A stretch of DNA of 63,812 nt, the filler included, from Olpidium bornovanus S191 (Eukaryota; Fungi; Olpidiomycota), in the NCBI GenBank assembly GCA_017911155.1. It is 30 parts of 30 records of this genome, joined end to end, with 100 filler letters (N's around TTAATTAATTAA, not from the genome) between each part and the next. Parts side by side here need not be neighbours in the genome. Positions count along the whole stretch, not along the records: positions 42,926 to 44,930 come from JAEFCI010005620.1; 29 more parts are not named here. One strand, 5' to 3'. Positions 42,926 to 44,930 of this stretch are shown here, one piece after another. The first letter of the stretch is position 1; every line of letters starts with the position of its first letter. The notes under the pieces are model-generated. The model saw nothing but the letters and a program-made list of their open reading frames with translations, had not been told where the DNA came from and did no database searches. The position numbers were made by a program, and so were the translations under genes.

Positions 42926-44930
42926 CCGCCGCCTTCGACGCGGAAATCTCGGTGGCAGACGCCGACGTCGCGGAGAAGGCCGACGAGCTGAGGGCGGCGG
43001 CAGAGTCGGTGAAATCCTGCGAGCTGGAATACGACAAACTGGCCGCGAACGTCGCACAGGCGGAAGCGGCGGCTTCGATGAATGAAGTCACCGCGAAGCT
43101 CGAAGGGGCGAACGCGAAGTTGGAGCAGCTCCCCAAAACGTCGATCGAAGAAATCAAATCCTTCACCTCGCCACCCGAGCCGGTCGTCGTCCTGGTCGAA
43201 GCGATCTGCATTTTGTTCGATGTCCGGCCCTCTTGGGAAGACGGCAGGAGACTGCTTTCCAGCCATAATTTTATCCGCAGAATGATAGATATGAACCGCA
43301 GGAGCCTTTTAGACACCCCGGGAAAGCTCGACCGCCTAAGAAGGCTACTGGAGGGACCGACGTTCGAACCAGTGAGGTTGGGTGCAGTTTCCGTCGCGGC
43401 CAGAAGCCTGTGCGAGTGGGTGACGGCGCTCGTGGAGTATGCCGTGGCGGCGAGGTTCAACGCGGCTCAGCAAACGAACTTGTCCAGAGCAAGAGGCACG
43501 TTGAACTCGAAGGCGGATTTATTGGAGGCGGAACGGAAAAGATATGCCAGGCTGCAAACCGAGCACACCCGACTGAGCAAAAAATGCTTCGATCTTCGTC
43601 ACGAAAGGTGGATGACCGTCGGTCAAAAGTTCTGGAAACTGGACGTCCTGGAGGATAAAGAGCCTGCGCCGAACGACGGACCGGCCGCGGAAGCCAGATG
43701 GTTTCAGAGGTCGTTTTACCGCGACGGTGAACAGGAGCGCCCTTTGGACGCCGAGTTGATGGCCGCGTATAAGGCGCACCAGGATGCGAAGGAAGAACTC
43801 CGAGACCTTGAACTTCAATGTTGGAAAGACCTGGGCTCCGCCCGGGAAAGCTTAGAGGAAGCTCGGCGGATTGTGGCGGGCGTCAACATCGCGGACGTGG
43901 AAGAGCTGCTGGAAAGCACACGGCAGTCTGCCTTCGAGTTGGGGATGAAAGAAGCCATTTGCTGCCTCTTGAACCAGGAAAGACCGTCGGCGGCCCAAGT
44001 CGTTCGCAAAGTGAGCAGTGCGGCGAAATTTGATCTGAGAAATTGAAAACCCGCCGTCCCGGCCCCGCCCTGCGTTTGACCGCGTTTCTTTTTTATTTTT
44101 TTTTTTATTATTTCATTTTATTTTTTTTTTTTTACTTTATTCTGGTTTTAGTTAGCTTCTATTCGAGGGGGGGACATATTGCGCCTAATGCCGGTTCTGA
44201 AAGCCATCATACCAAACTCGGCCTTTCGAGATGACCATTTCTACCAGAAAACATTCACCGGGGCGACGGCCCTTTCGCCGTTCGCCGGATGTCGCTTTGC
44301 CTGCCTGACGCGCAAATGGATTGGAAGCGTCTACAATTACGGCCAGACGGTGCATAAGCGTTCGAGCGCACTGGAGCAGGCAAGGGACACAGTGCAGAAC
44401 CTTGGAAAGAGGTGTGCCGATCTGTGGTGGAAGGAGTACGGAGACGACCCGACGTTATGGCCTTACGACACTATTCTTGTGAGGAAAAAGGTAAAAGAAA
44501 AACGGAATAGGGGCAGGAAACTTACTCACCATCCGGGCGCATCTGTAGATTTTAAGTTTCGGATGTTCTACTGCTGATTGGCTTGGATCTGAGGCGGATA
44601 GACCCTACCCCTTACCGGCCCCCTTGATTTTTTTTTTTTTTTTTTGCCATTCGGAGGCTACGCAGGGCGCTAATCTGTCCCGCTACGTTTTTGTTTTTTT
44701 TTTGTTGACATCTAGGAGCTGCGACAGAAACTGTCAAATCCCCCAGACCAACAAGCGCTGATGTACTTGAATGCGGTACATAAGCCAGCGGCTCTCAGCG
44801 AGATCTTGGCATGCGTCGGGGGCATCATTAGCCCCGACGACACCGGGGTTCAGCCGTCGACCCTGCCGGCAGATCCCGGGGAGTGGATGTCACGTCTCGC
44901 GAGAATCCCCGCGGAATTGGACCCGCGCGC
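42926..44930 (+). CDS. Protein with tandem dynein stalk/microtubule-binding-domain-like units (partial at both ends)
   Basis: LEQLPKTSIEEIKSFTSPPEPVVVLVEAICILF...SWEDGRRLL...FEPVRLGAVSVAARSLCEWVTALVEY is followed by a second unit CWKDLGSARESLEEARRIVAGVNIADVEEL...EAICCLL...KWIGSVYNY. Exons 42926-44010, 44152-44490 and 44716-44930. Confidence 0.8.

Follow-up and report, generated by a model that had tools for sequence, protein, structure and literature searches.

The piece at positions 42926-44930 of the window (the whole 63,812-nucleotide stretch of Olpidium bornovanus S191 DNA that was analysed) very probably encodes the stalk region of a DHC10 orthologue; DHC10 is the class-10 dynein heavy chain of zoosporic fungi, with a length of 6,400-6,800 aa. 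It carries a canonical dynein microtubule-binding domain (MTBD), called unit 1, and then a second coil-plus-head unit, called unit 2. We read unit 2 as a degenerate copy of the stalk tip that arose by internal duplication; the sequence supports this well, and the structural data agree with it without being decisive.

On the + strand, where all features described below lie, the piece reads as one reading frame in three exons, with phase 0 at every exon junction. Exon 1 runs from the piece edge, which cuts the frame at 42926, to 44010, exon 2 spans 44152-44490, and exon 3 (44716-44930) is again cut by the piece edge. Intron 1 (44011-44151, 141 nt) and intron 2 (44491-44715, 225 nt) both have GT..AG ends and long T runs. 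The piece was searched exon by exon, and the folded models are those of orthologues. A search of 42926-44930 against Rfam gave no match, and a scan of the piece for bacterial promoters and terminators remained at chance level, which is irrelevant to a eukaryotic gene.

Unit 1 and Its Short Return Coil

Exon 1 opens with the distal part of the stalk coiled coil (CC1; aa 1-66, 42928-43125), which aligns with DNAH6 CC1 and with the Pfam MT profile from position 77 onward. In the AF2 model of the Spizellomyces punctatus orthologue, the CC1-equivalent helix (residues 2-65) showed a pLDDT of 84-94. Unit 1 follows at 43126-43452 (aa ~67-175), and its identity as a dynein MTBD, first recognised from the sequence alone, was confirmed by profile and sequence searches. 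Exon 1 aa 44-217 matched Pfam PF12777 (MT) with an E-value of 6.2e-11 and 42.4 bits (gathering cutoff 24 bits); exons 2 and 3, taken singly, gave no match to this profile. The best PDB-chain match to unit 1 by phmmer was the DNAH6 stalk/MTBD (E 8e-22), and the leading sequence matches among solved structures were stalks of canonical axonemal inner-arm dyneins (DNAH6, DNAH2 and DNAH1; PDB 9fqr, 8j07 and 8i3j). The hallmarks of these dyneins from H1 to H6 (DI.E.K, PP, W and S.AA..LC.W) are present in unit 1, with H1 as TSIEEIKS at 43138-43161, the proline pair in PPEP at 43171-43182 and H6 as SLCEWV at 43405-43422. In addition, the unit HMM scored 172 bits on unit 1 and the Atlas feature search pointed to PF12777 clusters only, while a word-index protein search with exon 1 found no match.

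The return coil of unit 1 (CC2, 43453-43611) ends in KKCFDLRHERW, with HERW at 43600-43611. The distance from the H6 Trp to HERW is 61 residues, compared with exactly 90 to E..RW in all eight canonical heavy chains (8/8), which agrees with the shortened coil that had been read from the sequence. In a canonical dynein heavy chain, AAA5 comes after the stalk. Unlike the inner-arm dyneins, the window gene has a CC2 that is ~29 residues short and does not run at full length into AAA5, and a second hairpin takes the place of that domain. Since units 1 and 2 are only ~45 linker residues and a coil apart, no AAA5 can fit between them, and the proposed tandem arrangement of dynein-type stalk-tip units without an intervening AAA5 stands. 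A shared LxKxCxDL...W motif, also proposed earlier, follows each of the units, as KKCFDL..ERW (43579-43611) behind unit 1 and as KRCADLWW (44407-44430) behind unit 2.

The linker between the units (43612-43743) contains a class-10 family motif, ARWFQRSFY at 43693-43719, which reads SESQWIQQAFH in orthologues. Its Trp258 and Gln260 are invariant across a 13-sequence alignment, and the motif occurs in one copy in each of 14 relatives and is absent from DNHD1.

Unit 2: A Probable Second Stalk Tip

Unit 2, a second and shorter coiled-coil hairpin, is split by intron 1, and its head lies ~250 aa from that of unit 1. The first half (43744-44010, exon 1 aa ~273-361) comprises an outgoing coil (aa ~273-320) and the head helices H1'-H2', represented by IADVEELLE at 43888-43914 and EAICCLL at 43951-43971. 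The second half occupies exon 2 (44152-44490) and comprises a variable head loop, an H6-like helix (RKWIGSVYNY, 44311-44340) and a return coil that holds the KRCADLWW motif given above and LWPYDTIL at 44455-44478.

Direct comparison within the piece gave faint signals: the BLASTP support for unit 2 was E 0.037, and BLASTP of unit 1 against exon 2 returned nothing. With the unit HMM, exon 1 aa 297-351 fell on MTBD profile positions 5-59 and exon 2 aa 55-86 on positions 121-152; these fragments scored 5.5 and 6.8 bits, in the expected register and spacing. With a profile built from orthologues only, positions 7-126 fell on exon 1 aa 240-360 with 41.7 bits and positions 128-235 on exon 2 aa 3-110 with 51.6 bits, the second match continuing the first across intron 1.

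The hhalign comparisons of unit 2 were performed with profiles built from orthologues. Unit 2 aligned with unit 1 at a probability of 91% (E 1e-6, 128 columns), with 21 canonical heavy-chain MTBDs at 96.6% (E 5e-10, 149 columns) and with the multi-MTBD family of protists, described below, at 96.4% (E 1e-9, 126 columns). The reversed unit 2 gave E-values of 0.0085-0.12, and the best of 20 column shuffles gave 0.02, so that all controls stayed at E of at least 0.0085. The MTBD-like character that had been claimed for unit 2 is upheld by these values, and the head, as a degenerate MTBD copy, therefore points to an internal duplication of the stalk tip.

The AF2 model of unit 2 from S. punctatus (pLDDT 82) shows a two-helix hairpin whose cap consists of three short helices and, after a disordered stretch, an H6-like helix. 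In a Foldseek search of the PDB with this model, the top 16 matches were all dynein stalks (E 0.012-0.2). The VIA search, which is independent of Foldseek, gave alignments of 167-184 residues to dynein stalks only, with Z-scores of 8.4-9.2, which are not above the helical background. The unit 2 profile found no dynein match among PDB sequences, and an ESM Atlas shape search with the model returned unrelated rows with TM <0.4.

These structural results bear on the possibility that unit 2 is not derived from an MTBD at all, being instead the strut/buttress hairpin of an AAA5 that has degenerated, or else some unrelated coiled-coil hairpin that resembles a stalk tip through helical composition. 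Such an origin would fit Foldseek E-values of 0.012 or more, the many unrelated two-helix hairpins that equal the VIA Z-score of unit 2, the missing dynein match in PDB sequences and the uninformative Atlas search; in addition, the strut of class 10 was not located by Kollmar, according to the accessible text (PMC5100056). However, against three independent MTBD profiles hhalign aligns the whole head, H1 through H6, collinearly at 91-97%, where the reversed and shuffled controls fail, and every match spanning both coil and head is a dynein stalk. Moreover, the gap of ~40 residues between CC2 and the hairpin leaves no room for the AAA5 elements that precede a buttress. An origin outside the MTBD thus keeps a slim chance, and a duplicated stalk tip is the reading that we retain for unit 2.

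The Segment after Unit 2

A third, diverged unit had been suspected from 44716 onward, the start of exon 3. This exon (44716-44930), with ALSEILACVGGII at 44791-44829 and DPGEWMSRL at 44872-44898, is a candidate partial unit 3, but the claim found little to hold it up: exon 3 gave no significant match to unit 1 (BLASTP), to the orthologue profile or to the MTBD profile. In hhalign against the MTBD profile, its best register was the expected one, at E 0.014. In orthologues, the position of exon 3 falls between unit 2 and an F-box, an assignment that is positional only, because its MAFFT placement against the orthologues is weak. What follows unit 2 is thus a short helical segment. Its counterpart in the orthologues weakly resembles the PP-H2-H3-H4 part of an MTBD; it matched the multi-MTBD profile at a probability of 83% (E 9e-6, 50 columns; controls at least 0.011) and the canonical MTBDs at 19% (E 0.0012).

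Probable Assignment to Class-10 Dyneins

An exhaustive HMMER search yielded 1,612 matches with E up to 0.001, which are of two kinds, multi-unit and single collinear. The single collinear matches, over query residues ~31-357, come from chytrids, namely Borealophlyctis (P0014, 6,579 aa), Spizellomyces 'palustris' (P0016, 6,481 aa), Phlyctochytrium (P0032, 6,419 aa), Rhizophlyctis (P0023), Homolaphlyctis (P0078), Clydaea/Lobulomyces (P0141/P0162, 6,766 aa) and Nowakowskiella (P0004); S. punctatus SPPG_06767 (P0169) was added to this group subsequently. In alignments, the window gene runs collinear with this group over four segments (unit 1, the linker with its motif, unit 2 and the stretch ahead of the F-box), at 19-29% identity to the orthologues, and the layout of the units is kept in at least nine species. 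Like DHC10, it has a stalk with an MTBD followed by a long unique region without recognisable AAA5, and the sequence downstream of unit 1 matches the orthologue-only profile.

In a tree of the unit-1 region with 51 sequences, the sequence from the piece and 15 DHC10-type sequences were monophyletic with an SH-like support of 0.846, and the sequence from the piece was sister to the other members of the clade. This tree is moderate evidence, since the alignment is short and the rooting is at the midpoint. The window gene differs from the known members in that its CC2 still ends in the canonical ERW, for which they have KRELVGR, and in that it branches outside all sampled members. According to the accessible text of Kollmar 2016, class 10 is restricted to Chytridiomycota and Neocallimastigomycota and its strut could not be located; within that text, the unique region is not described as a stalk-tip duplication and the term F-box has no occurrence (PMC5100056). 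In the literature searched, no paper on the DHC10 layout or on a multi-MTBD layout was found apart from Kollmar 2016, nor any mention of class-10 dyneins after the 2016 catalogue. The family has been known since 2016, and what the duplicated stalk tip, the F-box and the dead site in AAA1 add to the knowledge of it is modest.

Since the piece holds neither AAA4 nor the F-box, the full architecture of its gene has to be drawn from the orthologues. Their Pfam domains follow the order DHC_N2, AAA_6, AAA_7, AAA_8, MT, and DHC_N2 with AAA1-AAA4 lies upstream in every full-length or genomic relative examined. In AAA1 of the orthologues, GxxxxGKT is kept and the Walker B sequence DEFNR is replaced (FRQLDR, MRNIER, LQNLER and similar), with loss of the catalytic Asp-Glu pair. 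Pfam found no confident AAA_9 in the relatives, with a single sub-threshold trace in P0078. An F-box-like domain occurs ~355 aa past unit 1. Dynein_heavy (D6) is weak in P0016; for Dynein_C, P0078 has a clear match (E 1.3e-25) and P0032 a weak one. The C-terminal part of the relatives contains an NPHP3-like segment, a NACHT/STAND NTPase and WD40 propellers, and a C-terminal tail of ~1,500 aa with WD40 repeats was found in P0014, P0162, P0169 and L001. The last of these, a 30-kb genomic contig, carries DHC_N2, AAA_6/7/8, MT, F-box and AAA_16/WD40 in a row on one strand. By analogy, the window gene would have a DHC_N2 linker and AAA1-AAA4 upstream, and downstream an F-box, a degenerate AAA5/AAA6/C-sequence, a NACHT-type NTPase and a WD40 propeller.

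Comparison with Multi-MTBD Proteins of Protists

Dozens of the best matches were protist proteins of 386-1,568 aa that consist of 2-9 PF12777 units with a period of ~150-175 aa and carry no AAA domain. Examples are P0152 (9 units), P0168 (6 units) and the proteins of Tripos fusus (P0159), Diphylleia rotans (P0006) and Picozoa (P0011). They share with the window gene the tandem dynein-type stalk-tip units, the short coils and the lack of an AAA domain between units. They differ in that each of their units scores well against PF12777, in that no AAA ring is found anywhere in them and in that they are without the DHC10 linker motif; in the unit-1 tree, they form separate branches.

The sequence-only reading had taken the window gene for a stand-alone, non-motor protein of this general kind, with arrayed dynein-type MTBDs and no AAA domains, possibly acting as a microtubule cross-linker or tether. 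That such proteins of 2-9 units exist and give the highest summed scores to the query speaks for it, as does the length of the sole transcript contig seen (3.5 kb). The high scores of the multi-unit proteins are, however, sums over several units, whereas the best single collinear stretches (query residues 31-357) belong to DHC10 proteins, and the 3.5-kb Logan contig may be a mere fragment. Besides, three features of the window gene are specific to DHC10 (the linker motif, unit 2 and the stretch that in orthologues leads up to the F-box), and the tree places its unit 1 in the DHC10 clade, outside the multi-MTBD units. The window gene does not have two or more PF12777-scoring units at a period of ~150-175 aa; one unit passes Pfam, namely unit 1, unit 2 comes to light solely in profile-profile comparison, and the spacing is ~250 aa. 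A stand-alone array akin to the protist proteins is therefore very unlikely. Of the sequence-only interpretation, the tandem MTBD-type units and the homology of unit 2 to an MTBD are retained; the non-motor protein gives way to a gene that is collinear with DHC10, groups in its clade and has relatives with DHC_N2 and AAA1-AAA4. Where that interpretation knew of no named family, the layout is that of the class-10 dyneins (Kollmar 2016, PMC5100056), and on this point the reading falls on its own terms.

Two observations go the way of the sequence-only reading: AAA1 of the orthologues is without the Walker B pair, and the layout it had imagined (2-9 MTBDs, no AAA) does exist in other proteins. 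The AAA-less multi-MTBD family is separate from class 10 and apparently undescribed; it is a lead of its own and may be the more novel one.

Transcription and Sequence Variation

Run X1, labelled as this organism, contained a spliced contig of 3,506 nt with exon joins identical to those of the gene model, the piece corresponding to contig positions 1116-2754. Intron 1 is absent from it, and its joint at intron 2 lies at 44488/44714 (cut +2). Since the contig joins the exons and extends past the piece, the gene is expressed as a spliced mRNA that goes on beyond both ends of the piece. Two raw RNA-seq runs with the same species label (X21 and X24) yielded no reads, which carries no weight as evidence. 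The sequence occurs in the labelled organism and in soil and root metagenomes, a distribution that is compatible with a zoosporic fungus of soil without proving it. A soil-metagenome contig covers 42926-43740 with ~97.5% identity. The 19 differences listed for this variant comprise 14 synonymous and 5 nonsynonymous changes in the frame of the gene model (6 and 1, respectively, within unit 1), and from this ratio of 14:5 the gene is under purifying selection. Scans of metagenomes for flanking DNA, with protein patterns and a 30-nt exact pattern, found nothing.

A decaying dynein pseudogene or an assembly chimera of joined stalk fragments, for which the unusual layout, the highly diverged unit 3 and the homopolymer runs in the introns could be invoked, is scarcely credible and was rejected, as the frames are open over three exons, canonical introns are removed in the cDNA contig, the layout is conserved in at least nine species and synonymous changes are in excess in the soil variant.

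Proposed Function and Related Dyneins

Since the orthologues have lost the Walker B pair of AAA1, it is quite possible that the protein is no working motor, and it is probably unable to run a power-stroke cycle. It could instead serve as a dynein-derived scaffold in which unit 1 is predicted to keep microtubule binding. Unit 2 is predicted to be a structural brace or a partner-binding arm rather than a second tubulin binder, because it lacks the PP and Trp hallmarks and its centre is variable and disordered. The F-box and the NACHT-WD40 tail would suggest functions in recruitment or switching.

Taken to its full extent, this proposal makes the 'unique region' of DHC10 a tandemly duplicated stalk and the protein a non-hydrolysing, dynein-derived scaffold, with two MTBD-type heads or perhaps two and a half, that acts as a microtubule-anchored ubiquitin ligase or STAND switch; we give the whole of it an outside chance. 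If it were true, a possible role, and a speculative one, would be to mark the axoneme for proteasome-assisted breakdown after flagellar retraction in chytrids. Retraction of the chytrid flagellum followed by such breakdown of the axoneme is attributed to Venard et al. 2020, as cited in the accessible text of PMC11772885. With a degenerate second stalk tip at the start of the unique region, an F-box after it and an AAA1 that has lost its catalytic pair, the 'unalignable' stretch gains a testable architecture. The picture is that of a pseudo-motor that may recruit other machinery while one or more of its heads hold microtubules. Spizellomyces punctatus can be transformed and carries an orthologue, and localisation and knockout look feasible in it.

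Other dyneins offer a partial parallel. A preprint proposes that DNAHX and DNHD1, heavy chains with insertions within or close to the stalk and with an AAA1 that is without the catalytic Walker B residues, are non-motile (Chai et al. 2025, PMC11785096). It describes these insertions as disordered and not as a duplicated MTBD, and, unlike DHC10, the two proteins are without an F-box, NACHT or WD40 tail. Weak matches to the DHC10 stalk region came from DNHD1 (E 3e-5), and DNHD1 is the next branch in the unit-1 tree, a grouping that may be due to long-branch attraction.

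Stalk Return Coil, Introns and a Soil Variant

The return coil of the stalk (CC2) closes in the window gene with the canonical ERW, which is kept at 43600-43611; all other sequences of the class-10 dynein heavy chains (DHC10) carry KRELVGR at this place. Retention of ERW fits the position of the window gene as the earliest branch of the DHC10 clade.

A variant of window 42926-43740 was found on a soil-metagenome contig (run X4), about 97.5% identical and differing by 14 synonymous and 5 nonsynonymous substitutions. These data indicate that a close relative lives in soil and that the frame is under purifying selection. 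Both introns of the gene contain long T homopolymer runs (44081-44146 and 44615-44654), which were passed over as repeats in the read comparison.

Domains of the DHC10 Orthologues

An F-box-like domain is located within the unique region of DHC10 orthologues, about 355 residues past the canonical microtubule-binding domain (MTBD, unit 1), at ~3605-3647 in P0016 (Spizellomyces 'palustris'), ~3975-4017 in P0162 (Clydaea/Lobulomyces) and 1375-1413 in P0078 (Homolaphlyctis), as well as in P0032 (Phlyctochytrium). The final residues of the piece under study, IPAELDPR (44905-44928), could be the start of such a domain, which the edge of the piece would then cut off.

In the orthologues P0169 (Spizellomyces punctatus), P0014 (Borealophlyctis), P0032, P0162 and P0013, AAA1 has lost the Asp-Glu pair of Walker B, with other motifs standing in place of DEFNR, and the AAA1 P-loop GxxxxGKT is kept in most of them. 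The C-terminal STAND NTPase of the same proteins has an intact P-loop, with GESGMGKT at 5294 in P0169.

Possible Relation to DNHD1 and Gene Fragmentation

In the tree of the unit-1 region, mammalian DNHD1 sequences branch immediately outside the DHC10 clade, and they give weak matches to the DHC10 stalk region (E of 3e-5 to 9e-4). This proximity may reflect shared ancestry or long-branch attraction.

An entire DHC10-type gene was located on a 30 kb genomic contig of a relative (L001:1-21503), where prokaryote-style gene calling had split it into about 14 pieces. Such fragmentation accounts for the short, microtubule-binding-only appearance of database entries such as P0022.

Tandem MTBD Proteins Outside the Window

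A separate, widespread family found outside the window consists of proteins of 386-1,568 residues with 2-9 dynein-type MTBD units in tandem, all scoring as PF12777 at a period of about 150-175 residues, and with AAA domains absent. Neither the solved structures nor the literature search yielded an AAA-less multi-MTBD protein. Members include P0001-P0003, P0005-P0012, P0015, P0017-P0019, P0021, P0152, P0159 and P0168, among others, and sources include Tripos fusus (a dinoflagellate), Picozoa, Diphylleia rotans, one MMETSP transcript and metagenomes. P0005 presents an additional N-terminal Hmw_CFAP97 match.
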